Positions 1 through 15,864 of a DNA stretch of 64,000 bases are shown one piece after another. Location of the stretch: sequence record MK773491.1, one strand, 5' to 3'. Position 1 is the stretch's first letter. Each line of letters opens with the position of its first letter. A program made the translations under genes and the position numbers. The notes beneath the pieces are model-generated. The model saw only the letters and a program-made list of their open reading frames with translations. It was not told the origin of the DNA and made no database searches.

Positions 1-1013
1 TTCCCATTGCCCTGTACTGTATATCTTGGCGTGAATGTGAGAAGACGATCTCCACCACCTCCATCCATATAACCCGCAAAATATAGTACACCATTAGTAT
101 CAGATAGGATATTCGTCCAATACGTCTGGATGGATGTCCCAAATAGTGATAATAAATTACCCGGCTTAAATGCTAATTGTGCAGTATATAACCGAACATT
201 CGCATCTACACTAATATTACCTATCCCCCACGCACCAGCATAATTTCTTCCTGAACAATAATATTTTCCGTCCGTCCTAAAAAGCATAAAATGTGTTTGA
301 CTTATACGAAATGCATTATATTCATAATCTACCTCAGACGTAGCCTCAGAAAATAATTGTGTCCATGTAGTATATACAGTACTTTGAGATGTAGTCTGCA
401 TCTGTTGATAAGTGTTATCTCCAGTACCCCAAAATGTTCCATCCAAATCCTGATATACTCCATTAATATTCGTTATCCAACAATCCTGTACTGACGATTT
501 TAATAGTACTGGCGTGAAACTAGGAGTTTTATTAGCACTACCAAAGTAACCATAATCGTTTTTTCCATGTGCATATAATGAACCATCATTCAACAAAATA
601 TAAACTGTGTTGTAATTCATTGTTATTTTCTTAATCTTTAATATATCAAAATACGTAGAATAAAATGAAGTCTTATCAACCCATGTGGCTGTATTACTAG
701 TACCATCATATATCGTCTGACGACCTGTATAAAATAATTTATCATCATTCGATAATACAAACGTTCCATATGTACTACCCCATGCAGTCTTTACATCCCT
801 CTTAACTAAATGCATCTCACCATAGTAATTTACACCAACTGGAAAACCCAAAACATATCCATAATTCTTATCACAGGTTCCCCATAACTCTCCATTATTC
901 AAATGCATCCACATCGTCGCTGCGGTATTATCCGAATCCAAAAAGAAGTCAATCACTTTTGCGGGTGCTGCTACCTTATTCCCATACTCTAATATCCTAG
1001 TAAATGGTATCAT
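1..1013 (-). CDS. Partial (runs off left edge) beta-rich repeat protein, RCC1/beta-propeller-like; N-terminus MIPFTRILEYGNKV
   Basis: ATG at 1013-1011 preceded by GGGGATAAT. Frame translated at both ends (MIPFTRILEYG...; ...LLTFTPRYTVQGNG). Not in ORF track because there is no stop in the window. MIPFxR..YGN starts recall a paralog family of GAP32/121Q-like jumbo phages (from memory). Confidence 0.7.
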   Translation of the reverse strand, partial: MIPFTRILEYGNKVAAPAKVIDFFLDSDNTAATMWMHLNNGELWGTCDKNYGYVLGFPVGVNYYGEMHLVKRDVKTAWGSTYGTFVLSNDDKLFYTGRQTIYDGTSNTATWVDKTSFYSTYFDILKIKKITMNYNTVYILLNDGSLYAHGKNDYGYFGSANKTPSFTPVLLKSSVQDCWITNINGVYQDLDGTFWGTGDNTYQQMQTTSQSTVYTTWTQLFSEATSEVDYEYNAFRISQTHFMLFRTDGKYYCSGRNYAGAWGIGNISVDANVRLYTAQLAFKPGNLLSLFGTSIQTYWTNILSDTNGVLYFAGYMDGGGGDRLLTFTPRYTVQGNG

Positions 1014-1427
1014 ATTATCCCCCTATAATTATCATTATATCATATTTACCCATATATATACCCTTTTTAATATATTAGAAAACTCTATAGTACTACCATA
1101 TATACACCATATAAACGCATAGAAAGCCATAAGAGAAGACTTCTCCAATATTATACACAGGTGTAGCTCCTGTAGATAGCGGCTCTTAGACGCTTATCGA
1201 AAGGATTCAACACCTGTAAAAATACCCAATTGTTAATATGTACAGTACTTTTACTTTTAAAATTATTCAGGAAATAGTTACACATTGAACTATATTAGTA
1301 AGTACTAATGGAAGCTACTATTCAGTACTTACCCCCTTCCGCTATATCTTCTCTGTATAAGAAGATAGAAAAGTACTAAAAAGTACTACACACCTTTTTT
1401 ACAAAGTACCATTCAACCTTTTTCCCG

Positions 1428-1516
1428 AAAGTACTCCATCCTAAATCCCAATCCTAGAAATTTTGGAGTACCCTCCAACCTCCAGCTAAAATCTCAAAAG
1501 TACTCCATCCTAAATC
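1428..1516 (+). repeat. 20-bp direct repeat AAAGTACTCCATCCTAAATC (1428-1447, 1497-1516)
   Basis: Identical copies read directly in a non-coding region. Confidence 0.9.
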
Positions 1517-1827
1517 TGAATCAACAAAATGCTGGACAACCATTCAGTACTAAATTATAATGTTATTAGTGGGAATCTACCCTCGTATATATGATGCTGT
1601 ATATAATATCAGTACTGAACGAATTAACAGTATTAGTAGATATACCAGTACTGAAAATATTTTGAAAATAGTTGTTGACACCGTGGGGAGATTTTGACAT
1701 AATACACGGCATGGGAGATGTGGTGAGTTATCATCCTGACTTCTGTATTGTTTATGAAAATAGATTGGAACAGTACTAACACGTTTATAACAACGTAACA
1801 GTACTGATATGAAGTGAAAAGTATTAC

Positions 1828-1847
1828 CCACCAGCTTAAGCTGGTGG
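1828..1847. other. Perfect 20-bp palindrome of two back-to-back Chi sites (CCACCAGC-TTAA-GCTGGTGG)
   Basis: Exact match to enterobacterial Chi GCTGGTGG on both strands. Confidence 0.9.
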
Positions 1848-2037
1848 ATGTGGTTAGAATAATAAGAAGGGGAAATCCCCAATCATACGATGAACTATAT
1901 TCAATTCTACCAGTACTGCGAATAGTTACTCCACAAGAATGAGAAGACTGTTGTAGTACTGAACTTTTTATGACGAGAAAATTTGAATAGATTTTGGGTG
2001 TACTTATCCTGTACTCTGGACGGATTAAGGGCGTGTT

Positions 2038-2140
2038 TGATTCTCATTCGCATATAAGAATGATAAACTTTCTCAACATGAGAATGGTTCTCAGTTGCAA
2101 ATAAGAATAGTTCTCAAATGAGAATAATAATGATTATCGT
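2038..2140. promoter_or_regulatory. Array of Fur-box-like hexamer repeats
   Basis: TGATTCTCATTCGCAT, ATGAGAATGGTTCTCA, ATAAGAATAGTTCTCAAATGAGAATAATAATGATTATCG resemble GATAATGATAATCATTATC. Confidence 0.55.
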
Positions 2141-2237
2141 TTTCAGTACTAGACTAATTTTTCCATTGGCTAGCCTACCGCGACGGAATATAATATTCCG
2201 GCAGTATCACGAATCAGCTTGTTTTAAATCTGCCGTT

Positions 2238-2266
2238 ATTATCTCAATATCTGGGTAGAATGTCAA
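2238..2266 (-). promoter_or_regulatory. Leftward sigma70 promoter TTGACA-17-GATAAT with no downstream ORF
   Basis: Near-consensus hexamers, 17-bp spacer. Confidence 0.65.
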
Positions 2267-2290
2267 GCTAATATTTTAAAAAATAAATGC

Positions 2291-2490
2291 TTGACACGTT
2301 GGCAGTACTTTGCTATTATATACACATAGCAAGAACAATGCTCAAGCCCACAGGGTGCGGAGGTGTATTCGTTAAAAGCTAAATGCGAATGATTATCATT
2401 TCGCTCATATGATACATTTCCGCACCCTCTAGGGTCTCCGCTTTCTCGCGTCTATGTAGTAATTATACGGTAATGCGGTTTATGCGTCAA
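2291..2490. ncRNA. Convergent promoter pair enclosing two inverted RCCC-N-GGGTGC motifs and a central Fur-like palindrome
   Basis: + TTGACA(2291)-17-TATTAT; - TTGACG(2490)-17-TATAAT; motifs 2346-2358 and 2422-2435; AATGATTATCATT 2388-2400. Confidence 0.55.
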
Positions 2491-2640
2491 GTACTTTTTT
2501 AAAGAAAATCGAAAATAATTTAGTACTATATGTATATAAGGAAGGAAAAAGAATTTTCAAAAAGTACTTGCATTCTAATTTCACCTATTGCATAATAGCT
2601 ACATCGAAACGAGATACACAAACACATTAAGGAAAACGAT

Positions 2641-2874
2641 ATGATTCGCATTGTTCGCATTAATTACTCTACCGGTGAAGCTGATAAAGTAGCGGTTATT
2701 GTATCAGAAAAGAATGATGATCATCTACACAATACGCTGATGCGTTTTGTTAGTGCGGTTGACCGTTGGGCTAGTATTGAGTACTTAGAAACGTTTAAAG
2801 TCCCTGCCGTCCAGCTTAACGGGCATGATATTAAAGCAATTTGGAATGCTGACGAAATGATCGCGAACATGTAA
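2641..2874 (+). CDS. Hypothetical early protein
   Basis: Own promoter, AAGGA RBS. Confidence 0.85.
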   Translation: MIRIVRINYSTGEADKVAVIVSEKNDDHLHNTLMRFVSAVDRWASIEYLETFKVPAVQLNGHDIKAIWNADEMIANM

Positions 2875-2965
2875 TTATTTCAAGTACTATCAAAATTTAC
2901 TTGACTTACTTTGATAGTACTTTATAATACTTACATACAAACGAAGTACTATTAAGGAAAGCATT

Positions 2966-3097
2966 ATGATCACTATCGAGAAAATCCGTTTAGCAGTAGA
3001 AGAACTGATCGCGGCTGGCTGGATTGTCGCAGAAAGTGAAGAAGAAATTAACATTGTAGTAAATGGTATGTATTCAGTTATGACAAACGTGGAGTAA
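2966..3097 (+). CDS. Small hypothetical protein (43 aa, MITIEKIRLAVEEL)
   Basis: Promoter cassette and AAGGAA RBS; below ORF-track cutoff. Confidence 0.75.
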   Translation: MITIEKIRLAVEELIAAGWIVAESEEEINIVVNGMYSVMTNVE

Positions 3098-3179
3098 GTT
3101 AGTATTAAAAGTACTTGCATTTACTTAGCGAGTACTTTATAATACTTACATACAAACGAAACACTATTAAGGAAATATC

Positions 3180-3797
3180 ATGGAAAACATCATCGACGTT
3201 ATCAAGTCTGTTTCTTATGCTGATCTGAATGAAGAACAAAAAGAAAAAGCTATTGAGATCATGCGAGAGTTAGAAAATCAAGAAATGACTCCGTTTTGGT
3301 CTGTAGATATTACTGATCAATGGAAAGAAACTTTAGACACTGAATACGGCATTACTGATGCAGTGATTTATTGGTCTGGTTTTTGTTCACAAGGTGACGG
3401 TGCATCGATTAGTACTGAATACTATATTGATATTGAGAAGTTTTTACGTAAATGTAAAGCGTGGTCAAAATTCCGTGTACTGCACAAAATTATTGACCGT
3501 GAAGAAATTCATGCTAAGATTGAACGTAGCTCAAGCCGTTACAATCATGAAAACACTGTAAGCGGTAGCGTAGAGCTTGATTATAACATTGATTGGACGG
3601 CGAAGCAGGAAAGCGAAGCTGAACGCTTAGAAGAATTTTTGACCGAAACTATTCGCGAACTTTCTTGTAAGCTGTATAAAGAACTTGATAATGAGAATGA
3701 TTATCAAAACAGCGATGATGCTCTTTGGTCTACCATTGAAGCAAATGAATATGATTTTGCTGTAAACTCAAACGGCGACGTTTTGCGTATCGCCTAA
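3180..3797 (+). CDS. Acidic phage protein with WSGFCSQGDGAS motif
   Basis: Promoter cassette, RBS; motif recalled from phage/plasmid hypothetical proteins. Confidence 0.85.
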   Translation: MENIIDVIKSVSYADLNEEQKEKAIEIMRELENQEMTPFWSVDITDQWKETLDTEYGITDAVIYWSGFCSQGDGASISTEYYIDIEKFLRKCKAWSKFRVLHKIIDREEIHAKIERSSSRYNHENTVSGSVELDYNIDWTAKQESEAERLEEFLTETIRELSCKLYKELDNENDYQNSDDALWSTIEANEYDFAVNSNGDVLRIA

Positions 3798-3902
3798 AGT
3801 ACTGACATACTGTAAAACGCTCTATAACGCATTGTAGGGCGTTTTAAGGAATAGCAGTATCATTTATCATCTTAATTAATTAAACGGCGTAGACGGCGAT
3901 TT

Positions 3903-4073
3903 ATGAGCAAACAAGATATATTGAAAGGGGATGTTTTATACTGGTTAGATCCTGATGATGGGATCTGTTCTGGATGGGTAACAGTATTAGACGTTAATAC
4001 TACAGTACTGGTAAAAGGTGCAACGGCAGAATTTGAAGTGCTACCCGAAGAACTTTATTCGCATGAAGTTTAA
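3903..4073 (+). CDS. Small hypothetical protein (56 aa)
   Basis: MSKQDILKGDVLYWLDPDDG...; ends at the next promoter cassette. Confidence 0.7.
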   Translation: MSKQDILKGDVLYWLDPDDGICSGWVTVLDVNTTVLVKGATAEFEVLPEELYSHEV

Positions 4074-4157
4074 AAAGTACTTGCAAAGTAAATCTAAAAG
4101 CGTATAATGATTTGCATAGGGGGAAACATCTTCCCCCCACTATTAAGAGAAACGATT

Positions 4158-4598
4158 ATGACTATCTACTATCTGACTTATAAAACCGCCGACAATGTAA
4201 CTGATGCTAATGTGACCGCAAACACGGTACAGGAAGCAATGGAAGTACTGAAAGCGGAACTACCTGATATTCAGATCGTTTGTGTAGTTGATACCGAAAC
4301 GAATCTTAAAACTATTATTGACCACTATGATTATTTCCGTGGGCGTAAGTTACAGGACTGGTATCATATCGAAATAGAAACACGTGAACTACCAGAAGAA
4401 CAACAGCACTTTGAGCAGGGTACTAGCATTTGGGTTACTACCGATAAACGCATATATTTCTGTTCACGCATACACGTTAACAAGCGTGTTAAAATTGGGG
4501 CAGATTCATATAGTGGACTGTTTACAAATAGTAACCTACTAAATGACAAGTACATAAAAGTTTATGAGCGTTTTGGAACTGATATTTACGCTTCATAA
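4158..4598 (+). CDS. Hypothetical early protein
   Basis: Start moved to ATG 4158 after the leader hairpin and RBS. Confidence 0.8.
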   Translation: MTIYYLTYKTADNVTDANVTANTVQEAMEVLKAELPDIQIVCVVDTETNLKTIIDHYDYFRGRKLQDWYHIEIETRELPEEQQHFEQGTSIWVTTDKRIYFCSRIHVNKRVKIGADSYSGLFTNSNLLNDKYIKVYERFGTDIYAS

Positions 4599-4602
4599 TA
4601 TC

Positions 4603-4729
4603 ACAAAGGGGAAGCAATTGCTTCCCTGTTTATTTGTACAGTACTATAATCTATAGATACAATACCGCACCCCGTGGGCTAATGTGTTTTCATGGGTATT
4701 ATTATGCCAGTACTACAAACATTTGTCAA
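4603..4729 (-). ncRNA. Candidate ~95-nt sRNA: TTGACA-17-CATAAT promoter, GCCCACGGGGTGC motif, intrinsic terminator
   Basis: Promoter 4729-4701, motif 4667-4679, bidirectional hairpin 4607-4627; near-duplicate at 13171-13297. Confidence 0.6.
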
Positions 4730-5127
4730 TCATTATTTTCAATTAATTTAAACGCACTGTAACACTGTATAAGGCGTTTTGTTATTAAGGTAAGCAAACG
4801 TATTGAGTACTATCTAAAAGGCCGTTGTGGGCTTGCTGGTGGCGTTGTGTTGTAGTATTGAAATATAAGGAAAATATAAAAAAGGCTGTCAATGATTAAA
4901 AAAGTACTTGACGGATTGATTTAGTACTGTCATAATGTATCACATAGAGCGGCGGGATGGATAAACATTCCTAAGTAGACAGCCAGTAAGTCATACGAAA
5001 GACTGGTGCCGAACTGAAAGAAAGATTGAAAAGAGTTTTAAAAAGTACTTGACAAGCTGGTGGGAAATTGAGATAATGACCCCGTAGACAGCAAACAACC
5101 TAATTAAACTTTAAGAGGAAATATACA

Positions 5128-5715
5128 ATGACTACTACTACTGAAAATGCACGTGTTACCCTGAAATCTGCACTGGAAGCTGGCGACGTTAAAACCCTTG
5201 CTGTTATCCTTGCGAAAGTTGGTCATGATAAAGACGGCGTATCTAAATTGGGCTTGACTTTCTCACTGGCGGTTAAGGAAGCGAAGGAAGTACTTAAAGA
5301 GCAAGCCAAAGCAGCAGAAGAAGCTGCACGTCAGGCAGCAGAACGCCGCGAAGCTAAAAAGGCTGCACGTCAAGCCGAAGAAGAAAAGCGTCAGGCTGAG
5401 ATCAAGGCAGAAAAAGAAAATATGCTCAAGTTCCTCATGGATACGGTTAACGGTATGGGCTTAGACCTTGAGGCGGCAGAAGCGGCAGCAGAAGCGGCAA
5501 TTGTTAAAAAGTACGGCGATGTTAACAAAGTACCTAAGTATACTTTTAACCGTGTAGCGGTGATTGTAGACGGTAAAGAATACAACATGCCAACTTCTGG
5601 GAACATGGTAGAAGTACTTAAAAATGCACTTGAAGCAAGCGGTAAATCGCGTAAAGAGTTTATCATCGAACACGCGAAAGACAAGGCAGAAGCGGAAGCG
5701 GCATTCGCTGAATAA
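5128..5715 (+). CDS. H-NS-like protein (coiled coil plus H-NS-like C-terminal domain)
   Basis: PKYTF...G..VEVLKNALEASGKSRKEFII resembles H-NS PAKYSY...[23 protein letters not shown]; Ala/Glu/Lys helical linker. Confidence 0.5.
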   Translation: MTTTTENARVTLKSALEAGDVKTLAVILAKVGHDKDGVSKLGLTFSLAVKEAKEVLKEQAKAAEEAARQAAERREAKKAARQAEEEKRQAEIKAEKENMLKFLMDTVNGMGLDLEAAEAAAEAAIVKKYGDVNKVPKYTFNRVAVIVDGKEYNMPTSGNMVEVLKNALEASGKSRKEFIIEHAKDKAEAEAAFAE

Positions 5716-5732
5716 TAACAGTACTAAACTAT

Positions 5733-5759
5733 AGGCGGCCTAAGTGGTCGCCTTTTTTT
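5733..5759 (+). terminator. Intrinsic terminator
   Basis: AGGCGGCC-TAAGT-GGTCGCC-T7. Confidence 0.85.
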
Positions 5760-5773
5760 AATTGGGGGATTAT

Positions 5774-6034
5774 ATGGCTGTAGGATTCGCGAAAGACGGG
5801 GCAGAACAAGACGAGATTTTAGCGGTCATAAACGCCGCTGTAAGCCACGCAAGGAATCAGATAGGGGATAGTACTATTACAAGTAGAACGCACTGCCTAG
5901 ACTGTTCTAGGACTATTCCTGAGCGTAGACGGGAAGTAGTAAAGGGTGTTAAGTACTGCGTAGAGTGTCAGGCTGATCATGATAGTATATTTAAAAGAGA
6001 TCCGCGTAATTGTTGGCACAGATCTATGAGATAG
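5774..6034 (+). CDS. TraR/DksA C4-type zinc finger protein (YbiI-like)
   Basis: MAVGFAKDGAEQDEI...CLDC..IPERRR...GVKYCVECQ; GGGGGA RBS before 5774. Confidence 0.9.
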   Translation: MAVGFAKDGAEQDEILAVINAAVSHARNQIGDSTITSRTHCLDCSRTIPERRREVVKGVKYCVECQADHDSIFKRDPRNCWHRSMR

Positions 6035-6115
6035 TACTTGACATACTTTCTGATTAAAGTATAATGATTTGCATAGAGGGAAACATCTTCCTTCACTAAT
6101 TAAGGAAATAGAATC

Positions 6116-6388
6116 ATGCGTACACCAATGACCCGCGAAGAAATACACACAGTACTGACAACTAACATTCAGGACTGGAAGAAATACGCAGATATTAACG
6201 AAGCTCAAGACTTGAACAATGAGCTAGATGGTGAAGATCTGGACGTAATTTGTTCCCCTGAGTTTTATGATGATATTCATTCCGATGATGATGTTTGGAA
6301 TGTACTGGAAAAGCATTTCCTCGATACTGATTTAAGTATCTACTCGCGTGATACTTTTATTTTAATTCACAACATTTATAACAAATAA
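6116..6388 (+). CDS. Hypothetical early protein
   Basis: Promoter/hairpin cassette, RBS. Confidence 0.85.
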   Translation: MRTPMTREEIHTVLTTNIQDWKKYADINEAQDLNNELDGEDLDVICSPEFYDDIHSDDDVWNVLEKHFLDTDLSIYSRDTFILIHNIYNK

Positions 6389-6467
6389 TTGTTGACTTAC
6401 TTATATAGTACTGTATAATGGTTTGCATAGGGGGAAACATCTTCCCCCATCAATTAAGGAAAAGAAA

Positions 6468-6677
6468 ATGACTCGATACACTGTAGAAGTACGTACTACT
6501 AAAAACATTGCTACTGATGTGATTCGTTATTATAAGATGGTTTGTGGTGTTGCTCGCCGTATTAGTAAAGCGGATTATGACAAGCTGGATCGCGAAGCTG
6601 ATGGTATGGATTGTTTTTATACAGTAAACACAAAAACGCATACAAAGCAATTTAAAACATTGTCTTATTACATGTAA
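6468..6677 (+). CDS. Hypothetical early protein
   Basis: Start moved to ATG 6468 after AAGGA RBS. Confidence 0.85.
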   Translation: MTRYTVEVRTTKNIATDVIRYYKMVCGVARRISKADYDKLDREADGMDCFYTVNTKTHTKQFKTLSYYM

Positions 6678-6760
6678 AAAGTTTTACTCCAGTACTTGAC
6701 AATAGATGCGAGTACTGGCATAATAACTTTATTGAAACGAAATACTATTAAGGAAATATC

Positions 6761-7150
6761 ATGGCTAATCTCATTGTTCGATTGTATGAAGATTGTTTCT
6801 ACTTTGAGTATTGTGGGAAACCTATATCCGTTAAAGAGATGATCGCATCGGGCTATATGTTATCTAAGCATGATCACACTGGATTCATGGCTGAAATGAT
6901 TGCGGCTAGTTATAAGTTTGGTGAAGAATGGGAAGCACAATATTTTCCGGCTGTCAATGCAATGATTAAGCGGTTGGCAGAACACACTGAGTTTATGGAA
7001 TTTTGGACTGTTTTAAAAATGGTTGACGTGAATCAGAATGGGGAAACGTGTCAGCCATACGCACATTTTGACGCTGGGGAAGATATTAGCACAATTTGGA
7101 AATGGTTGGAAGATAAATTTACAACAATTAAAATTGCAGATTACTTGTAA
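6761..7150 (+). CDS. Hypothetical early protein
   Basis: Promoter, RBS. Confidence 0.85.
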   Translation: MANLIVRLYEDCFYFEYCGKPISVKEMIASGYMLSKHDHTGFMAEMIAASYKFGEEWEAQYFPAVNAMIKRLAEHTEFMEFWTVLKMVDVNQNGETCQPYAHFDAGEDISTIWKWLEDKFTTIKIADYL

Positions 7151-7234
7151 AAGTACTTGCATTACTATCTGAAAAGCGTATAATGGTTTGCATAGGGGGA
7201 AACATCTTCCCCCACTAATTAAGAGAAGAATATC

Positions 7235-7615
7235 ATGGCTAATCAAATCACTCCAGCACAGACCTTCAATAAATTCAGTACTGAAATCGTATTGAAAGAG
7301 TATGTGCCAGATTATGGTTGGACTGATGCATGTGTATGCACTGATGTAGCAGATGCAAAGCAACGCATTAAAGATTATCGTGCGGAGGGTTTACAGGTTA
7401 AAACTGCCCGTCGCCGTGTACTTAACAAAGATGCTTTCTTATGTCAAGCTCTTTTAAACTTCTGCCGTGACTACTATCGCCGTACTGGTGGATTATGGCC
7501 TAATGAGGTTGAAGTACTGAAATCTAACGGTAAAGTAAAATTTACCTTGACTTTAAAAGAAATTGAGGAAGTACTTGGTGATGATTGTTTTTTAGTAACT
7601 TCACAGCCAGCATAA
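7235..7615 (+). CDS. Hypothetical early protein
   Basis: Promoter/hairpin cassette, RBS. Confidence 0.85.
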   Translation: MANQITPAQTFNKFSTEIVLKEYVPDYGWTDACVCTDVADAKQRIKDYRAEGLQVKTARRRVLNKDAFLCQALLNFCRDYYRRTGGLWPNEVEVLKSNGKVKFTLTLKEIEEVLGDDCFLVTSQPA

Positions 7616-7684
7616 AAAAGTACTTGACACATAACGGGGATATGATACAATATCCCCATATTGAAAAGTAATGGAAGTACTGAA

Positions 7685-7876
7685 ATGAATTATCAAAAGG
7701 TTAGCAAGCGAGTAGTTGAACTCTCTAAGAAAGCACGTAAAGAGTATACCTTAGAACGTTCAATTAACAACTATCATTTAAAGCAAGGTGATAAGTTTAT
7801 TGTTATTGACGAACCTTTGGAAATCGTGTATATTGTAGTTAATGCGATGATTCGTGATAAAACGAGGATTAAGTAA
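7685..7876 (+). CDS. Hypothetical early protein
   Basis: Promoter TTGACA 7624; ATG start. Confidence 0.7.
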   Translation: MNYQKVSKRVVELSKKARKEYTLERSINNYHLKQGDKFIVIDEPLEIVYIVVNAMIRDKTRIK

Positions 7877-8131
7877 ATGCGTACATTAGACCAACTTATT
7901 GACCCTAATACGTCAGCACGTCGATCAATGGTTACTATCGGCGGTAATGGTAAACAACACTGGAGTGGTTACATTTGCTTTATTGTTGGTGGAAAAATGT
8001 ATGAGCGGGTAGTATATCACAAAGAGATTAATTATATACTATTCCGTAAAGAAGTCATAGCAGTCGATCCTACCGCCCTAAAACCGATTGCAGGGGCATG
8101 GAACAAAGAATCGCTGTACCTTACAGCTTAA
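7877..8131 (+). CDS. Hypothetical protein
   Basis: GAGGA RBS; abuts the upstream stop. Confidence 0.8.
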   Translation: MRTLDQLIDPNTSARRSMVTIGGNGKQHWSGYICFIVGGKMYERVVYHKEINYILFRKEVIAVDPTALKPIAGAWNKESLYLTA

Positions 8132-8180
8132 CCAATAAAAGGCCGCTACGTGCGGCCTATCGCGTTCTAGAGGGTATATT

Positions 8181-8363
8181 ATGAATACTGTACAAGTACT
8201 AGATGAGATTGAAAAAATTGTTGACAGTACTAACAAACGTGATATACTGTTATCAAGAAATGAGGCTAACCAGTACGAAAAGAATTGCGTACAATCGGTA
8301 AAAGGGGGCATCTTTGAATCGTTACACACAGCCATACTTCAAGGGAATCACAACTGTTCCTGA
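8181..8363 (+). CDS. Hypothetical protein
   Basis: GAGGG RBS. Confidence 0.65.
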   Translation: MNTVQVLDEIEKIVDSTNKRDILLSRNEANQYEKNCVQSVKGGIFESLHTAILQGNHNCS

Positions 8364-8567
8364 GCGTAAAAAGAAACTACGCACAGCACCGAAACGAAAG
8401 CGTAAAGTACTTAAACTTAAACCAACGTATGGTTGGGGATTGTCGTGGGATGAAATCAATCACGGCCTATCATGGAATCAATTATATGTTATTGGCTCAA
8501 GTGTTGGTCGCTTTCATTTTAGTACTATATCACGACACGAAACACGTGTAAACCCATATAAAAGTAC

Positions 8568-8752
8568 TTGACATGCATCCGGCTTAGTGAGATAATACTT
8601 ACAAGCCGGAGAAATGGCGTGACCCAGCGGGTGCGAAGAAGTAATAAGTACTTGAGAATGATAATCATTTACGATACTAGACAGATTTATGCACCCGATG
8701 GGTTAGATTGTTTTCATGTGTATATAATATCAAAGTACTATTATAGTGTCAA
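8568..8752. ncRNA. Second convergent promoter pair with inverted ACCC-N3-GGGTGC motifs and a central Fur-like box
   Basis: + TTGACA(8568)-17-GATAAT; - TTGACA(8752)-17-TATTAT; motifs 8622-8634 and 8691-8704; TGAGAATGATAATCATTT 8653-8670. Confidence 0.6.
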
Positions 8753-8844
8753 GCATTTTTATTTGATAATTATTTTAAAAAAGTCTTGCATTACTTTCTG
8801 AATAACGTATAATACTTACATCAACCACTAAGAGGAAAGAAACA

Positions 8845-9216
8845 ATGTCTATTAAGCGTATTGTATTTGGTCGCGGTGCAAGTGAAGAAGTAGTACCTGT
8901 TGAACTGATCGCGATGTTAAATGAAATGATTCGCCGTGGTGATATTAATTTTAGTCCTGATGTAATGCCTTATGCGATTTCGTATGAGGTGCGGAAAACT
9001 CCGAAGTACTGGAAGATTGACCGTGTGGAACTGGACAAAGAAACTGGTGCGATTCGCGAGTTTGGGCGTAGTTCTGTTGGTGCTGTAGACTTTGAAGGAA
9101 ACGTGTTTAAGTCTGCAAGTTATAAAGCAGTTGCAAAGGGTATCCGTGGAAACATCTTTGTTCACAATGGTTTTAGTGCAATTACTGGTGATGGATATAT
9201 TCGTTATTTAAATTAA
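8845..9216 (+). CDS. Conserved phage hypothetical protein (VFKSASYKAVAKGIRGNI)
   Basis: Promoter, GAGGA RBS. Confidence 0.85.
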   Translation: MSIKRIVFGRGASEEVVPVELIAMLNEMIRRGDINFSPDVMPYAISYEVRKTPKYWKIDRVELDKETGAIREFGRSSVGAVDFEGNVFKSASYKAVAKGIRGNIFVHNGFSAITGDGYIRYLN

Positions 9217-9304
9217 AAAGTACTTGCAAAGTAATCTGATTGGCGTATAATGTTTTACATAGAGAGGGGGAAATAGTTTCCCCTCCAAATTAAGGAAAAG
9301 TATC

Positions 9305-9541
9305 ATGGCACAGAAAATCACTCGCGAAAACGTAGAATTTTACATTGGTATCCTGAATGCTAAACTTGAACAAATGGATGCCCCGCTGCGTTACAAAATG
9401 ATCCCTGTTGCTGGTGGTTATGAGTTGCAAAAGTACAAAGGCGATATTCAGGTTGATTATTGCGTATCAGGTCAAAAACTCCGTGAAGTTTATGAGATTG
9501 TACGCTTTGCCGCCAATATGATTTCGGATAATATGAAGTAA
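9305..9541 (+). CDS. Hypothetical early protein
   Basis: Promoter/hairpin cassette, RBS. Confidence 0.85.
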   Translation: MAQKITRENVEFYIGILNAKLEQMDAPLRYKMIPVAGGYELQKYKGDIQVDYCVSGQKLREVYEIVRFAANMISDNMK

Positions 9542-9615
9542 TTATTATCAAAAGTACTTTACAAGTACAGTAGAGTACTTTATAATACTTACATCAATTA
9601 AGCAAGGGGAAACAT

Positions 9616-9789
9616 ATGATTGGTATTTTTGTTTGGGTAGCGACAATTATTATCGGTTTCATTGGTTTTATCTGGAGTCGTGATGATTTGTTTAATACAT
9701 TGATTAAATTTATACTATATGCTGTGTGGTTTTTTGGTGTTATTATTCTGTATCAACAAAATGGTTTTTCTGGTATTCCTTTGAAGTAA
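9616..9789 (+). CDS. Small two-TM membrane protein (57 aa)
   Basis: MIGIFVWVATIIIGFIGFIW...LYAVWFFGVIILY; cassette promoter, RBS. Confidence 0.8.
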   Translation: MIGIFVWVATIIIGFIGFIWSRDDLFNTLIKFILYAVWFFGVIILYQQNGFSGIPLK

Positions 9790-9868
9790 TTATTATCAAA
9801 AGTACTCTTGACAATACTTTGAGAGTACTTTATAATACTTACATCAATTAAGCAAAGAGGAAAACAAA

Positions 9869-10174
9869 ATGCAAATGTCTAACCTGTATGTAGCTCACAT
9901 CACTATGCGTCATGGCGAATATGAAACACTGGTTAAGCGATTGATTATTGCTAAGAGTTTAGCAGAGGCAGAATTATACGCCTATGAAGAAGGGATGGCA
10001 ACATTTGACGGTAGCGAATTAGAAGATAAATCCAGCTATCAAGAATCGGATCAGCCTCATACGTGGTACTTCTCAGGCGGTGATTGGTGCGTTACTCTTA
10101 ATGCTGTTACATGGATTGAGGATCGCGAAACAGCTAAAGTAATTGCTAAATCTGATTTACTGTCTTATCTGTAA
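9869..10174 (+). CDS. Hypothetical early protein
   Basis: Cassette promoter, GAGGA RBS. Confidence 0.85.
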   Translation: MQMSNLYVAHITMRHGEYETLVKRLIIAKSLAEAELYAYEEGMATFDGSELEDKSSYQESDQPHTWYFSGGDWCVTLNAVTWIEDRETAKVIAKSDLLSYL

Positions 10175-10242
10175 AAGTACTTGACAACCTTTCGGGGGGT
10201 AGGATATACTATCCCCATCAATTAAGCAAAGAGAGAAACAAA

Positions 10243-10476
10243 ATGATTAAAGAAATTACTACCGCCCCGATTGAAGTACAGAAAGCATTTGAACATGTGC
10301 GTTCTTTCTTCCCTACTGTTAATCGCGTGTTGTACGATGAAGATTGTAGCTGGACATATATGGATGCATTCGGTGCTGCTCCTTCATTTGATGGTCACGA
10401 TGTTGATCAGGCAATTTTAGAGGCTGCTGCTGATGCTCAGTATAACGTCGCCGTACCAGTAGCATATAAGGCGTAA
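10243..10476 (+). CDS. Hypothetical early protein
   Basis: Promoter, RBS. Confidence 0.85.
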   Translation: MIKEITTAPIEVQKAFEHVRSFFPTVNRVLYDEDCSWTYMDAFGAAPSFDGHDVDQAILEAAADAQYNVAVPVAYKA

Positions 10477-10553
10477 TTATTATCAAAAGTACTTTACAAA
10501 TACAGTAGAGTACTTTATAATACTTACATCAATTAAGCAAAGAGAGAAACAAA

Positions 10554-10964
10554 ATGTTTAAAATTACTAGCGTAGAAAAAAGCGGCGATTCCATGATTGT
10601 AAGTGCTTTCTGGAATGATGCTTGTAAAGTATCTATTAGCTTTAATCAAATGGGCGTAGTACAATCCTGTACTTTCGCAGAGGATACCAAAGAGCGAGCA
10701 CAATTAGAAGATCATGCACGTGCGGTAATTAAATTCAATATTCCTATTGAAATGGAACCGCATATCATCTATACTGATGATCAGGTCGAGCAAATGAAAC
10801 GTTGGTATGAATCTTTGATTAAAGCGGAAAAGACCATTGCCGAAATGGATCAATGCATCGTTGAAGCCGATTGGTTATCTGATATGTTCGGGCAAACATC
10901 TGGTAGCATTATTGATGCCCTGTTTAATGTTCGTTCGGCGTTAGATCCACGCATCAATCAATAA
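10554..10964 (+). CDS. Hypothetical early protein
   Basis: Cassette promoter, RBS. Confidence 0.85.
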   Translation: MFKITSVEKSGDSMIVSAFWNDACKVSISFNQMGVVQSCTFAEDTKERAQLEDHARAVIKFNIPIEMEPHIIYTDDQVEQMKRWYESLIKAEKTIAEMDQCIVEADWLSDMFGQTSGSIIDALFNVRSALDPRINQ

Positions 10965-10967
10965 AGA

Positions 10968-11070
10968 AAAAAGGGGTTGACTTCGGTCGCCCCTTTTGTT
11001 ATTATATAGTCATTGGCAGATAAGCTACTAACCCATAGGGTGCGATAGTCTGTCTGTAGTATTTTAGTAC
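10968..11070 (+). ncRNA. Terminator/promoter fusion followed by TAACCCATAGGGTGC motif, no ORF
   Basis: TTGACT 10977 inside a UUCG hairpin, TATTAT 11000, motif 11029-11043. Confidence 0.5.
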
Positions 11071-11140
11071 TTAAAAAAGTACTTGCTTTTGTGTGCTGGT
11101 GGTGTATAATACTTGTATTGAAACAAACGAGGGTCAAACA

Positions 11141-11308
11141 ATGGAAAAAGAATTCGATTCTAGTGATTATGAATGTGCTCTTGATTATGCTTTCCATATT
11201 GAGCAAACGCAGCAGCGAACCGAAACAGAAGCTATTATGTTAGCGGCAAAGTACTATAATATTAATTGGCAATCATTGCAACGTTATGCGGATTCATTTA
11301 ATATCTAA
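11141..11308 (+). CDS. Small hypothetical protein
   Basis: Start moved to ATG 11141 after GAGGG. Confidence 0.8.
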   Translation: MEKEFDSSDYECALDYAFHIEQTQQRTETEAIMLAAKYYNINWQSLQRYADSFNI

Positions 11309-11373
11309 AAAGTACTTGCATTACTTTCTGATTAACGTATAATGTACTTATTGAAACAAACGAGGGTAGAGAG

Positions 11374-11625
11374 ATGGAAGATTTCAAAATTGTAAAACAA
11401 TTCTCATTGGCACAAAAAGATAATCAGTACTTTTGTACTATTTCACGTCGAGAAACACCGGAAACCGAAACTGGGTTAACATGGGAAGTTCTGACGCAGA
11501 CTAACACTGAAAAGCCAGTACTTGAAACTTTCGAACGTTATTCTATCGCAGAAATGGCTTTTAAAAACTATGTTATTACTTCATTGAATACTGATCATTT
11601 TTATCAGTACTCAGCAGAAAAGTAG
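11374..11625 (+). CDS. Hypothetical early protein
   Basis: Promoter, RBS. Confidence 0.85.
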   Translation: MEDFKIVKQFSLAQKDNQYFCTISRRETPETETGLTWEVLTQTNTEKPVLETFERYSIAEMAFKNYVITSLNTDHFYQYSAEK

Positions 11626-11702
11626 TTGACTTACTTTCTAATTAACGTATAATGGTTTGCATAGGGGGAAACAACTTCCCCCACTAATTAAGGAAATGAA
11701 TT

Positions 11703-12167
11703 ATGAATAGCATCCAGTTCGTAGAAGCCATTGAAAAAGAATTCCTGTCAGTATTCCCTAACGGTTTCTTTATTGCCCGACCTTTACCGTTAGGTGGTGA
11801 TGTAGGGATCACTATGGGACTGACTCGCGAACAGGCCGATTGCCCTCATAATATCCGTGATAATGATCGTATGCGTATGACCTTCGCGATCCACGGTATG
11901 AAGTTTGGTGATAGTGAAGATTATAACGATAAGTTAATCATGGAACCGTACTATTCAGCGATTAGCACGATTCCACGCAAGCCATATTACGCTATGGGAC
12001 ACGATAAGATAAAGACACGTAAAACCACTAACACGCCTGAAAAATTGCTGGTAACGCTTTCTAAGTACATTAAAACGGCAGGACAGCAAGTAAAAGAGCT
12101 AGCAGAAGTAAGCGAGATTTATCAGCAGGAACAGATTAAACCTCAGTACTTAGAAATTAACGTGTAA
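11703..12167 (+). CDS. Hypothetical early protein
   Basis: Hairpin cassette, RBS. Confidence 0.85.
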   Translation: MNSIQFVEAIEKEFLSVFPNGFFIARPLPLGGDVGITMGLTREQADCPHNIRDNDRMRMTFAIHGMKFGDSEDYNDKLIMEPYYSAISTIPRKPYYAMGHDKIKTRKTTNTPEKLLVTLSKYIKTAGQQVKELAEVSEIYQQEQIKPQYLEINV

Positions 12168-12244
12168 TTATTATCAAAAGTACTTTACAAGTATAGTAGA
12201 GTACTTTATAATACTTACATCAATTAAGAAAAGAGGATTACAAA

Positions 12245-12469
12245 ATGGCGGCTAAAACTTTTGAACAGTTAAAATGGGTTGCTGGTCAAATCACTGATGA
12301 TCTGATGTATTCCCGAATGAATGAAGCAGTACTGAAAACTGTTTTCAATCGCCGTACTAAATCTACTGAAATGGCTACCCTATGCGGCCTTGTATGTGCT
12401 AGTGCTATGGAGCGTAAAATTAATACAGAAGTAATTGAGCGTTATTTACGCAACGTACATACTGAGTAA
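12245..12469 (+). CDS. Hypothetical early protein
   Basis: Cassette promoter, GAGGA RBS. Confidence 0.85.
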   Translation: MAAKTFEQLKWVAGQITDDLMYSRMNEAVLKTVFNRRTKSTEMATLCGLVCASAMERKINTEVIERYLRNVHTE

Positions 12470-12546
12470 TTATTATCAAAAGTACTTGCAAATCGAATGC
12501 GAGTACTTTATAATACTTACATCAATTAAGCAACGGGGTTTATATC

Positions 12547-12777
12547 ATGGATAATCGTGAAATCATCGCTCAAGTACTGACACGTATTTTAATGTCAACT
12601 CGACTTTCTCAGGTACGCAACATTACAGCAGCACATGAAAATACATGGCGTGAAGCCTTAAATGGTAGCAATGCAAGCCAGCTAGCGGCTGATGATAAGC
12701 TGAAAGAAGTTATCAAGTCTGCTATGGCGGAACTGAATGATGATGCTGTAGAATATGTTTTAAATTCTTTCAAATAG
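12547..12777 (+). CDS. Hypothetical early protein
   Basis: Cassette promoter, RBS. Confidence 0.85.
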   Translation: MDNREIIAQVLTRILMSTRLSQVRNITAAHENTWREALNGSNASQLAADDKLKEVIKSAMAELNDDAVEYVLNSFK

Positions 12778-12858
12778 TACTTGCATTACTTATCCAGTAC
12801 TGTATAATGGTTTGCATAGGGGGAAACAACTTCCCCCACTAATTAAGGAAATGAAAAA

Positions 12859-13167
12859 ATGATTGCTAACGTTCAAGCCAACTTTGAAAACCAATTCATC
12901 AATGAAATGTTGCGACTTGATGATGGGGTCGCCCGTATTAACTACGGTTTTAACTCCGGTGGTTATGAAAGTAACGTGTACTTTTATACTGCTGATGGTG
13001 GTACACTGGCAATCGATACGGTCATTGTCGAAATACAAAAAGTAAACTTCAATGATGAAAATGATCCGCAGTGGTATATCATCGGCTATGACGTGAACTA
13101 TGAAGATCAAGATCTTTATGACTCACATACCGGACAGCAAATCATTCCCGCTTATGGGGATGAATAA
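12859..13167 (+). CDS. Acidic hypothetical protein
   Basis: Hairpin cassette, RBS. Confidence 0.85.
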   Translation: MIANVQANFENQFINEMLRLDDGVARINYGFNSGGYESNVYFYTADGGTLAIDTVIVEIQKVNFNDENDPQWYIIGYDVNYEDQDLYDSHTGQQIIPAYGDE

Positions 13168-13170
13168 TAA

Positions 13171-13297
13171 CACAAAGGGGAGCTAACACTCCCCTGTTTA
13201 TTTGTACAGTACTAAAACATATAGATACAATTCCGCACCCTGTGGGTTAGCTTGTTTTCATGACAATAATTATACTAAAAAGCTGGTGGTGTGTCAA
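13171..13297 (-). ncRNA. Candidate ~95-nt sRNA, paralog of the 4603-4729 unit
   Basis: TTGACA(13297)-17-TATAAT(13274); TAACCCACAGGGTGCGG; terminator hairpin near 13175-13195. Confidence 0.6.
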
Positions 13298-13383
13298 GCA
13301 TTTATTTTATAAAAAAAAGTACTTGCATTCTTTCAGTACTGTAGTATAATACTTGTATTGAAACGAGATAAGGGAAACACAAA

Positions 13384-13923
13384 ATGATTACACAAATCTA
13401 TCACGGCAGCACCCGTTTTGATACTGCTGGTGGATATAAAGGCGGCAAACCTAACAGCTTTCAACATGGCGTAGGTCTGTATTGTACTAATGCTTACTTA
13501 TGGGCTGAAAAGTACGGTCGAAGTGTTTACGTGTTAGATGTTGAACTAAAACCAGAACATCACGCCGACAATGTAGAAATTACAATTGAAAACTTGCAAT
13601 ATTGGGTTAACTGCTATTGCTCGCAGAAAGTAGCAAAGATCTTTAAAAAGGAATTTAGCCAACGCGAGACTATGACCGCACATCGCTTTGAATTATGGCT
13701 GTACTGGAATGTAAGACGCTTTAAGCCTATAGCAGTACAATTAGCCGCTTTCTTTACTGCTCAAGGCGTAACGCATAATAGCGAGGTTGGTAATTATGGC
13801 GGTAAACTCATTCGTATATATGACTTTGATATTATCAAAGGTTATACAAAGGATAAAGAAGTACTACAGAAGTTAAACTACAATAATACGGAATTACCGG
13901 ATTATCTAAAAGAAAAAGTTTGA
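13384..13923 (+). CDS. Putative ADP-ribosyltransferase-fold protein
   Basis: N-terminal IYHGST and G-x-G-L-Y-C-T motifs typical of H-Y-type ART folds. Confidence 0.5.
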   Translation: MITQIYHGSTRFDTAGGYKGGKPNSFQHGVGLYCTNAYLWAEKYGRSVYVLDVELKPEHHADNVEITIENLQYWVNCYCSQKVAKIFKKEFSQRETMTAHRFELWLYWNVRRFKPIAVQLAAFFTAQGVTHNSEVGNYGGKLIRIYDFDIIKGYTKDKEVLQKLNYNNTELPDYLKEKV

Positions 13924-13980
13924 CAGTACTAAGGGAGTGTTATATAATACTCCCATGTTAAGCAAACGAGGAATTACAAA

Positions 13981-14205
13981 ATGTCTTTATATTCACTGGA
14001 AGTTGAACATCACAACTTTAGTACTAAAATGATTGTAAGTACTGACGCAAAAGAGAGAGAAGATCAGTACAATGAAGTTATGACATGGGCTAAAGGTTTC
14101 TATCCTGCTGGTACTCTTTTAAAGGCTAAGTGGGTATCACATGAAACTAAACTCGATTTTCATTCTGCAATTGCTGGTGGATATGAGGGGATTAAACTGT
14201 TATGA
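13981..14205 (+). CDS. Hypothetical early protein
   Basis: Promoter, GAGGA RBS. Confidence 0.8.
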   Translation: MSLYSLEVEHHNFSTKMIVSTDAKEREDQYNEVMTWAKGFYPAGTLLKAKWVSHETKLDFHSAIAGGYEGIKLL

Positions 14206-14351
14206 AAAAAGAATACATCATCCGAGTACAAATGAAAGGCGGTGCACAACGTACTTTTCGTGAATGGGGTTGGTCTGCTGGTATGGCCTTTGAACAGCTT
14301 AAAAAAGATAATCCCGATGTGCAATACAAAATAGAATCAAAAGAGGCGTAA
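14202..14351 (+). CDS. Small hypothetical protein (49 aa)
   Basis: ATGA coupling; stop is the TAA of the next cassette. Confidence 0.75.
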   Translation: MKKEYIIRVQMKGGAQRTFREWGWSAGMAFEQLKKDNPDVQYKIESKEA

Positions 14352-14428
14352 TTATTATCAAAAGTACTTTACAAGTATAGTAGAGTACTTTATAATACTT
14401 ACATCAATTAAGCAAAGAGAGAAACATC

Positions 14429-14665
14429 ATGAAACGTAAACTTACTATTTCCTACGAATGGTCTAAGACTGATGGTAGCGACGTAGAAGCACATCATGTG
14501 CCTTACTTAGAAGAATCAGCCTTTGAACGTATTCGCGAAATGATTGGTGATGGTTATGTAAAAGGCCAACTATCCGATAACCTTCACACACAGGAAGATC
14601 CAGACGACCACGAAGGAACTGATTATCATGGCTGGTGGACGTTAATAACTGAAGGTGAAGATTAA
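14429..14665 (+). CDS. Acidic hypothetical protein
   Basis: Cassette promoter, RBS. Confidence 0.85.
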   Translation: MKRKLTISYEWSKTDGSDVEAHHVPYLEESAFERIREMIGDGYVKGQLSDNLHTQEDPDDHEGTDYHGWWTLITEGED

Positions 14666-14744
14666 TTATTATCAAAAGTACTCTTGACAATACAAAGAGA
14701 GTACTTTATAATACTTACATCAACTAAGCAAAGAGGATAGGAAA

Positions 14745-14882
14745 ATGAAAGAATCTCAATACGAAGCAGTACTGGCACAGACTGGTGAAGATCTGACTAC
14801 TGAGCAGTACGCTAAAATTGAAGAGATGCTTTTAGCTGGTAAATCTGTTAAAGACACTGTGAAAGCAGTTCGTAAGATGTAA
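14745..14882 (+). CDS. Small hypothetical protein (45 aa)
   Basis: Cassette promoter, GAGGATAGGA RBS. Confidence 0.8.
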   Translation: MKESQYEAVLAQTGEDLTTEQYAKIEEMLLAGKSVKDTVKAVRKM

Positions 14883-15824: not shown

Positions 15825-15864
15825 CCGAAAGGGGGAGCAATCCCCCAAACTTTTAAGAGGATTT

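Follow-up and report, generated by a model that had tools for sequence, protein, structure and literature searches.

Results

Two head-on promoter units in the terminal repeat of Salmonella phage 7t3

The DNA analysed in this study, a stretch of 64 kb to which we refer as the window, corresponds with 100% identity to record positions ~62001-126000 of MK773491 and is part of the genome of Salmonella phage 7t3, a Rak2-like jumbo phage whose nearest relatives are SE_PL, Munch, PHA46 and Klebsiella phage fENko-Kae01. We became interested in two units, located at 2291-2490 and 8568-8752, in which promoters of the sigma70 type face each other across a palindrome resembling the operator of the iron-responsive regulator Fur, and in the family of short cassettes to which these promoters belong. 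The parts of both units, with leaders scored by a covariance model (CM), are:

2291-2319, plus strand: rightward sigma70 promoter of unit 1, TTGACA-17-TATTAT with extended TG, 11/12 consensus
2325-2378, plus strand: rightward leader of unit 1, hairpin 1 AGCA/TGCT, hairpin 2 GCCC-ACA-GGGT; CM 46.7 bits, nhmmer E 1.9e-10
2384-2402: central Fur-like palindrome of unit 1, core AATGATTATCATT at 2388-2400, 14/19 consensus
2402-2454, minus strand: leftward leader of unit 1, hairpin 1 CGC/GCG, hairpin 2 ACCC-TAGA-GGGT; CM 22.8 bits
2462-2490, minus strand: leftward sigma70 promoter of unit 1, TTGACG-17-TATAAT, 11/12 consensus
8568-8596, plus strand: rightward sigma70 promoter of unit 2, TTGACA-17-GATAAT, 11/12 consensus
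8602-8654, plus strand: rightward leader of unit 2, hairpin 1 GCCG/TGGC, hairpin 2 ACCC-AGC-GGGT; CM 47.8 bits
8654-8672: central Fur-like box of unit 2, GAGAATGATAATCATTTAC, 16/19 consensus
8671-8718, minus strand: leftward leader of unit 2, short form without hairpin 1, hairpin 2 ACCC-ATC-GGGT; CM 31.8 bits
8724-8752, minus strand: leftward sigma70 promoter of unit 2, TTGACA-17-TATTAT, 11/12 consensus

A motif of the form RCCC-N3-4-GGGTGC follows ~30 nt downstream of each of the four promoters, reading GCCCACAGGGTGC at 2346-2358 on the plus strand and ACCCTAGAGGGTGC, with its GGGTGC at 2427-2422, on the minus strand of unit 1, and ACCCAGCGGGTGC at 8622-8634 (plus) and ACCCATCGGGTGC, with its GGGTGC at 8696-8691 (minus), in unit 2. 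GGGTGC as such is found 20 times in the window, compared to 7.7 occurrences expected. A first-pass annotation of the same DNA had recognized this arrangement of face-to-face sigma70 promoters, each with its own motif, and had located the two centres exactly (AATGATTATCATT at 2388-2400 and TGAGAATGATAATCATTT at 8653-8670). It had regarded the units as alike in architecture only, but an alignment of unit 1 with the reverse complement of unit 2 gives 69% identity, whereas shuffled sequences do not exceed 56%, and by this comparison the units are inverted paralogues.

The predicted starts of the converging transcripts are ~120-130 bp apart with no terminator detected in between. The leftward promoters lead into non-coding DNA in unit 1 and in antisense direction into an open reading frame (ORF, 8314-8571) in unit 2. 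Each unit constitutes a long imperfect inverted repeat, whose read-through RNA reaches predicted folding energies between -31 and -48 kcal/mol (z-scores between -4.5 and -5.2), with the box located at the tip of the resulting hairpin.

Both units reside inside the direct terminal repeat (DTR) of the phage, ~1.0 kb (unit 1) and ~7.2 kb (unit 2) from its left edge:

1345-21983: direct terminal repeat, ~20.6 kb, placed by homology to fENko-Kae01

In the 7t3 record this repeat is collapsed and placed in the middle of the sequence. Its assignment is based on the alignment of the PhageTerm-defined DTR of fENko-Kae01 (1-19736; 19,736 bp) to this region, where position 1 of the relative corresponds to window position 1345 and position 18800 to 21047 (99.5-99.9% identity), with indels inside the repeat shifting the offset from 1345 to 2247. 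The leftmost ~1.3 kb of the DTR (1345-2640), which hold unit 1 together with an array of Fur-like boxes, do not contain a credible gene, as Munch annotates none in this part and the tiny ORFs of 7t3 look spurious.

A family of promoter-leader cassettes confined to the terminal repeat

The first-pass annotation had described a unit that is repeated twice. The module consisting of a promoter and its RCCC..GGGTGC motif in fact occurs ten times in the window, with the same set of copies retrieved by a regular expression, an nhmmer profile and the CM. The ten leaders start at 2325(+), 2402(-), 4647(-), 8602(+), 8671(-), 11011(+), 13215(-), 16612(+), 19424(+) and 20989(+). All of them are found within 2325-21041, hence inside the DTR, while the 42 kb of window sequence beyond this repeat contain none. 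The copies that are not part of the head-on units are:

4609-4729, minus strand: stand-alone cassette with promoter 4729-4701, leader 4695-4647 and intrinsic terminator 4626-4609; found by the CM, fold z-score -3.8
11011-11063, plus strand: leader copy with a composite stem-loop/promoter (10977-11005) ahead
13176-13297, minus strand: stand-alone cassette with promoter 13297-13269 (12/12), leader 13262-13215 and two-way terminator 13195-13176
16612-16659, plus strand: leader copy with a composite terminator/promoter (16570-16605) ahead
19424-19470, plus strand: leader copy with a composite terminator/promoter (19382-19417) ahead and a second promoter (19529-19557) downstream
20989-21041, plus strand: last leader copy, ~0.9 kb short of the right edge of the DTR

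Four leaders belong to the head-on units. Among the others, a second promoter follows in three cases and a two-way terminator in two, while a single one, at 16612-16659, leads directly into a ribosome-binding site and ATG. The two terminator-closed copies on the minus strand are predicted to give rise to free RNAs of ~100 nt, which in case of the cassette at 4609-4729 does not contain an ORF. Because the downstream contexts differ to such extent, we consider the leader as a module in its own right and not as an ordinary 5' untranslated region. Its promoter, being close to the consensus of host sigma70, can be assigned as an early promoter.

The family is not restricted to 7t3, as the Rak2-like phages examined contain 10-12 cassettes each. 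Copies in Klebsiella phage Muenster are distributed over positions 29-18785 of a DTR that spans 1-20030, with none following up to 45 kb, and those in coliphage vB_Ec-M-J over 1111-20099 (DTR 1-21525). Pectobacterium phage CBB harbours 12 copies (DTR 1-22456), and in a RaK2-like genome that is complete but not annotated (347.5 kb) all 12 are concentrated in one 19-kb stretch at 30.3-48.9 kb. The presence of 10-12 copies per terminal repeat corresponds to 20-24 per genome.

Several related elements were observed in the same region. Composite terminator/promoters, at 10977-11005, 16570-16605, 18414-18451 and 19382-19417, consist of a G+C-rich stem-loop that carries the -35 hexamer (TTGACT) in its loop or arm and whose T-run continues into the -10. 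The composite at 18414-18451 has no leader and leads directly to a ribosome-binding site. A second conserved leader type, defined by TACATCGAGAGGGG and a complementary CTCCCTC stretch further on, is located behind gene-proximal promoters at 9256-9269, 19562-19575, 20417-20430 and 21114-21127 (four copies compared to 0.19 expected). Finally, the minus strand of Muenster (L012) bears a leader-like CCCACTGGGTGC copy at positions 18-29 of the annotated genome start, where also its PhageTerm-predicted terminal repeat begins (position 1). This copy points outward and is equally found at 30288 of OU509535, whereas no equivalent was seen at window position 1345.

The leader is a structured RNA with covarying stems

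The leader encompasses ~50 nt at the predicted 5' end of the transcript. It starts with hairpin 1, which contains a purine-rich loop, followed by hairpin 2 of the form RCCC-N3-4-GGGU, the dinucleotide GC and a pyrimidine-rich stretch that could alternatively pair with GGGUG. For its characterization, we used the CM to align 61 leaders taken from nine sources, and since the alignment was fitted to this model the following statistics have to be read with that caveat; the model was required because an alignment by MAFFT only brings hairpin 1 out of register. In hairpin 1, two-sided changes are found in all four base pairs and 95.5% of cells are paired. Its covariation score of 0.461 compares to 0.145 in shuffles, with none of 500 reaching the observed value, and to at most 0.053 if the partner strand is slid, and more than 25 different complementary stems are encountered. 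In hairpin 2, CCC and GGG are invariant, while 33 copies have A-U and 24 have G.U as outer pair, an exchange by which pairing is maintained on the transcribed strand only. Both hairpins are independently predicted by RNAalifold. A third helix between GGGUG and the YRYCY stretch, although paired in 95.8% of cells, shows changes on one side only and is thus an unproven possibility. Outside of the stems, which measure 3-5 bp, the alignment contains CUAA, GC and the YRYCY stretch as the only conserved linear elements. A short form without hairpin 1 accounts for five of the ten copies in 7t3.

The leader does not correspond to an RNA family in Rfam 15. At the gathering score, a search of all 64 kb remained without hit, and with E-values up to 5 in the region 1300-21500 no match was located on a leader. 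The cassette is not described in the publications on CBB and fENko-Kae01, nor is the leader RNA in the literature that we have searched. We found no RNA-seq runs from infected cells, and the data covering the region are DNA runs and contigs from wastewater metagenomes and metatranscriptomes only, with four runs that were inspected attesting to its presence but not more.

Other assignments of the leader were considered and rejected. Inspected by eye, ATG codons are present in some copies only and are not conserved, which does not support a coding mini-ORF. Hairpin 2 might be mistaken for a DnaA box, as TAACCCACA matches TTATCCACA at seven of nine positions, but its loop varies freely (ACA, ATA, ACC, TATA, TAGA), which led us to discard this assignment. 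To our knowledge, there is also no resemblance to the repeats of enterobacterial type I-E or I-F CRISPR systems.

With respect to conservation, we observed that 121Q-like coliphages share a stretch of the leftward leader of unit 1 (2418-2469) at 94-96% identity and that the segment 2324-2368 is found with 100% identity inside wastewater contigs of other phages, which continue into a different promoter context. Single leaders are much better conserved than the surrounding genes, pointing to either strong selection or an exchange between cassettes.

Fur-like boxes in the units and in neighbouring arrays

The centres of both units had been proposed to carry the core of a Fur box. Compared to the 19-bp consensus GATAATGATAATCATTATC (PMC4506495), the central palindromes are good look-alikes with a match at 14-16 of 19 positions, in a range that includes the Fur site of E. 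coli's fur promoter (16/19, three mismatches). Across all boxes of the window the match amounts to 14-17 of 19 positions with the TGA...TCA core being retained. Such sites are strongly enriched. Allowing up to three mismatches to the 19-mer, we find five matches in the window compared to 0.05 expected (four sites compared to 0.13 in another count), and five compared to 0.03 expected in Muenster, while there are none in BF or vB_Ec-M-J. The 19-mer matches are 30-150 times more common than in shuffles, and all sites with up to three mismatches fall into the left 9 kb of the terminal repeat. Similarly, AATGATWATCATT is found with at most one mismatch at four sites of the window compared to 0.68 expected. 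The two boxes of the first-pass annotation are therefore not the only ones, with more being located at 2120-2144 and 3687-3705:

2039-2145: array of Fur-like hexamer boxes to the left of unit 1, containing sites with up to three mismatches at 2120-2138 and 2126-2144; 16/19 for 2120-2144
3687-3705: best match to the Fur consensus in the window, GATAATGAGAATGATTATC, 17/19, inside ORF 3180-3797

The array at 2039-2145, which is situated downstream of a leftward promoter at 2266-2238, shows an overlapping six-base repeat pattern as do its counterparts elsewhere. An array of ~5 overlapping boxes is found at 781-905 in Muenster, and the distance of such arrays from the 63-nt unit is 100-300 bp in 7t3 and the sequences L024, L025 and L028 taken together, and 250-300 bp in the latter three. 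The box at 3687-3705 differs in being located within an ORF and not between genes, and no counterpart was seen in Muenster.

In both units, the centre of the box is placed ~+56 to +68 from either predicted start, without overlap with the -35 or -10 hexamers. Further boxes in 7t3 and Muenster are found ~+50 to +190 downstream of leftward promoters with no ORF behind them. Since a tblastn search with E. coli Fur did not retrieve a homologue in any Rak2-like phage, a Fur-family protein binding to these sites would have to be provided by the host. On balance, we consider the binding of host Fur to the boxes as somewhat probable. An origin of the boxes as captured fragments of host promoters was also considered and abandoned, as no BLAST match was obtained in 5,426 E. 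coli genomes, a weak test in view of the short queries.

Quantized spacers in head-on pairs of related phages

Conservation of the architecture in relatives had been proposed as a check of the first-pass annotation. Head-on pairs were found in all terminal repeats that we have scanned, with two or three pairs each in 7t3, Muenster/OU509535, BF, vB_Ec-M-J and CBB, and additionally in Hallingskeid. In records that start at the physical end, the first pair is located at most ~1.3 kb from the left end, similar to the ~1 kb from the inferred end in 7t3. If the spacer is measured as distance from GGGTGC to GCACCC, its length is quantized to 45, 56, 63 or 67 nt:

45 nt: no box; both units of vB_Ec-M-J, all three of CBB, unit 2 of BF, unit 2 of Yen9-04
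56 nt: GAGAATGATAATCATTTAC or a variant with one swap; 7t3 unit 2, Muenster unit 1, OU509535, Hallingskeid unit 2, L024, L029
63 nt: GCGAATGA(G/T)(A/T)ATCATT; 7t3 unit 1, BF, Yen9-04, Hallingskeid unit 1, L024, L025, L028
67 nt: Fur-like, related variant; Muenster unit 2

Spacers of 45 nt are found in phages of E. coli and Pectobacterium and those of 56, 63 and 67 nt in phages of Salmonella, Klebsiella, Erwinia, Serratia and Yersinia. The Fur-like box accounts for the additional 11-22 bp of the longer spacers. Across genera, every 56- and 63-nt unit retains its core AATGAnAATCATT without change, while the flanks diverge, and the 19-mer of 7t3 unit 2 recurs identically in the 56-nt units of Hallingskeid, OU509535 and L029, with Muenster carrying the one-swap variant. 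The first-pass annotation had made its interpretation dependent on the conservation of the central palindromes, and their core is indeed conserved across four or five phage genera. The box-free pairs in turn define the box as an add-on and not as the core of the device. From this comparison, the head-on pair is the ancestral element and the box an insert, with the device apparently working without it in two genera.

Genes and repeated elements surrounding the cassettes

The cassettes are embedded among small ORFs without recognizable family. Sites matching the sigma70 consensus at 11 or more of 12 positions are abundant in this region, with 15 in 1300-9300 and 12 more in 10900-22100. In the gene-free left part (1345-2640), further near-consensus promoters are located at 1533-1561(+), 1675-1703(+) and 2266-2238(-), accompanied by many copies of AGTACT. 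When ten terminal-repeat proteins were searched against Pfam, matches were limited to a DksA/TraR zinc finger and three families without known function. The former is encoded at 5774-6034 on the plus strand and is of the C4 type (PF01258, E 3e-8), and the protein probably modulates host RNA polymerase early in infection. A search of the 64-kb window for tRNA and tmRNA did not give a hit.

The palindrome AGTACT is present in 254 copies in the window compared to ~21 expected from base composition, and it is the commonest hexamer inside (6.5/kb) as well as outside (2.7/kb) of the terminal repeat, with 945 copies in one complete RaK2-like genome. It is located directly 5' of many -35 boxes and directly ahead of many -10 boxes, but also ~15-25 nt past most leaders and beside the Fur-like box of 56-nt units. 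AGTACT may represent a binding site or else belong to a promoter specific to the phage.

Discussion

In the described units, two near-consensus promoters would direct polymerases towards each other through a pair of structured leaders and across a Fur-like box. The repeated location of such boxes downstream of strong promoters that lack an ORF suggests an action on the elongating polymerase and not on initiation. In the mechanism that we propose, iron-loaded host Fur would bind to the central operator and the related arrays further left, thereby residing between the converging polymerases, so that each promoter would yield its short leader RNA only. Upon iron starvation, Fur would leave the DNA and polymerases would enter the leader of the opposite promoter, resulting either in collision or in fully complementary RNAs of ~120-130 nt, which could fold into a long hairpin or pair into long duplexes. 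We infer transcription from these promoters, the binding of Fur, the roadblock and an effect on infection from DNA sequence, and we put forward, as a tentative model, that Fur would act as iron-dependent roadblock or insulator separating two short early RNAs. To this model we assign clearly less confidence than to the binding of Fur itself. In its broader form, where a strictly lytic jumbo phage would employ host Fur in cis on the DNA that enters the cell first, to decide between short free RNAs and self-annihilating duplexes, or where the repeats would soak up Fur, the proposal is more doubtful still. The interpretation offered by the first-pass annotation is in this sense partly supported.

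Several observations weigh against a Fur roadblock. Pairs with a 45-nt spacer carry no box, as found in vB_Ec-M-J (two of two), CBB (three of three) and the second units of BF and Yen9-04, and the box is absent in relatives although their hosts contain the same Fur. Classical Fur operators overlap with the -35 or -10 hexamers, unlike the boxes described here, which are found at a considerable distance downstream of either start. Polymerases originating from very strong promoters usually leak through a roadblock that consists of a single repressor. Finally, the boxes deviate systematically from the consensus at outer positions (GAGAAT or GCGAAT, and ...CATTTAC), which could reflect a different protein of related specificity.

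This last point leads to an alternative in which the palindrome is the operator of an early DNA-binding protein that is encoded by the phage and distinct from Fur, with a control that is temporal, by shut-off or insulation of the earliest promoters, instead of iron-dependent. Such a protein would account for the outer deviations and for a distribution of the box by genus irrespective of host Fur, as expected if it were gained and lost together with a phage gene, and most terminal-repeat proteins, being without recognizable family, leave room for it. We still regard it as unlikely, since the core preserves exactly the positions that define Fur sites (TGA...TCA within AATGAnAATCATT), the six-base pattern of overlapping repeats in the arrays is typical of the same regulator, tblastn did not reveal a Fur-family gene in the phages and no candidate protein has emerged. 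Somewhat less probable is a role of the boxes as sponge, which would titrate host Fur, derepress the iron-uptake regulon and in this way feed iron-dependent phage DNA synthesis, with their placement relative to promoters being secondary. Fur is present in only a few thousand copies per cell, to be set against many replicating genomes that each contain the terminal repeat twice, with at least 7-9 boxes in every repeat, and dense arrays outside of the head-on units (2039-2145 in 7t3, and the ~5 boxes at 781-905 in Muenster) as well as the box inside an ORF (3687-3705) would be in line with titration. The exact central placement in three types of units (56, 63 and 67 nt) and the location downstream of ORF-less promoters instead argue for a role in transcription, and box-less relatives infect hosts with similar iron needs.

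It is also conceivable, at a yet lower probability, that the palindrome acts as nucleic acid, either at the tip of the read-through hairpin as substrate of RNase III or in termination, or as DNA cruciform in the replication of the terminal repeat or the processing of its ends. The long imperfect inverted repeats with fold z-scores near -5 and the box at their tip, and the location of the first unit ~1 kb from the physical left end, conform to this idea. It does not explain why the same box, often in non-palindromic form, is found in arrays that are at no hairpin tip, why its sequence is conserved beyond mere symmetry and why 45-nt units form the long hairpin without it. A proposal that we find rather improbable assigns the AT-rich palindrome as -10-like hexamer (GATAAT or TATCAT) that is presented in both directions on the non-template strand and that causes sigma70 pausing or traps the polymerase without involvement of a repressor. 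Although the Fur consensus itself contains GATAAT and a weak promoter-like site overlapping with the box was flagged at 2372-2399 in a promoter scan, conservation extends over 13-19 bp, far beyond a hexamer, and the box at +50 to +75 is past the usual range of sigma-dependent promoter-proximal pauses. We attach hardly any probability to the view that the head-on layout is without function, with cassettes being recombination modules akin to the promoter-early stem-loops (PeSLs) of T4-type phages and pairs being left over from inversions or deletions. PeSLs are known to shuffle genes (PMC2839356, PMC4122927), and PeSL-like composite stem-loop/promoter cassettes with and without leader are found in 7t3, but leftovers would not be expected to recur as two or three pairs at matching positions in the terminal repeats scanned and in Hallingskeid, nor to show spacers quantized at 45, 56, 63 or 67 nt, nor to retain a part of the leftward leader of unit 1 that is 94-96% identical in otherwise distant coliphages.

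If host Fur binds, a strictly lytic phage would read or manipulate the iron status of its host at the very start of infection, which would bear on phage therapy at iron-poor infection sites, where Fur of Salmonella and Klebsiella is off DNA. Irrespective of Fur, the leaders constitute a covarying RNA family that is new to the literature searched and to Rfam and that is found behind near-consensus promoters in several genera of Rak2-like jumbo phages. The leader RNAs are likely among the most abundant early transcripts. The 10-12-copy leader would then define a class of early phage RNA that is both new and abundant and that might serve, for instance, as decoy for a host RNA-binding factor. Both the link to Fur and the RNA family are accessible to standard assays.

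Comparison with known systems

Individual parts of the described arrangement have counterparts in other systems. The boxes resemble Fur operators of Enterobacterales in their match to 14-17 of 19 positions, the TGA...TCA core and the arrays of overlapping six-base repeats, but they are found in a lytic phage and are placed downstream of transcription starts and not over the -35 or -10. In the literature that we have searched, Fur boxes are not linked to lytic or jumbo phages by any paper. The face-to-face promoters are reminiscent of pR/pL in coliphage 186 and prgQ/prgX in the Enterococcus plasmid pCF10. In these systems, promoters converge ~60-220 bp apart and give rise to complementary transcripts with a repressor site located in the overlap, and the outcome is set by the collision of polymerases in combination with antisense pairing, with each promoter driving genes and the two differing in strength. 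In 7t3, the transcripts are predicted only, both promoters are near consensus, the leftward ones lack an ORF and in some genera the pair has no operator.

Other parallels concern the leader. The nut sites of phage lambda, composed of boxA and boxB, and the put sites of HK022 are promoter-proximal leader RNAs that act on RNA polymerase. Like these, the leaders described here contain one or two small hairpins right after early promoters, which are supported by covariation, and the purine-rich loop of hairpin 1 (GAGAAA, GCGAAA) recalls the loops of boxB. Unlike nut and put, they contain neither a boxA-like element nor two long stem-loops (~65-70 nt), with stems measuring 3-5 bp, and only one of ten leads directly into a gene, while two are closed at once by a terminator and are oriented opposite to the direction of the genes.

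The left terminal repeat of phage T5 contains an untranslated stretch with direct as well as inverted repeats, palindromes and ordered DnaA boxes, whose role in stopping injection is itself a proposal (Davison, bioRxiv 10.1101/866236). As in T5, the long terminal repeat of 7t3 carries the earliest genes and an untranslated stretch in which inverted repeats are accompanied by a box array that a host protein may bind, but its boxes are Fur-like and tied to converging promoters, and a two-step injection is not known for Rak2-like phages.

The cassettes finally share properties with PeSLs, which are repeated cassettes of ~100 bp whose early promoter is close to the sigma70 consensus (Arbiol et al. 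2010, PMC2839356; Comeau et al. 2014, PMC4122927). Both have an AT-rich upstream part and cluster among small orphan genes, and a terminator stem-loop able to overlap with the -35 is shared by part of the 7t3 cassettes. PeSL-like elements in 7t3 are located at 16570-16605, 18414-18451 and 19382-19417. The stem-loop over the promoter is present in rightward single copies (16570-16597, 19382-19409 and 18414-18443) and absent from the four promoters of the units. Unlike PeSLs, ten of the 7t3 cassettes add a transcribed leader of ~50 nt with covarying hairpins, a feature not contained in either of the two PeSL studies (PMC2839356, PMC4122927), and they are confined to the terminal repeat, where several face against genes or each other. 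The cassettes of 7t3 represent a variation on known kinds of elements, to which a so far undescribed RNA family is attached.

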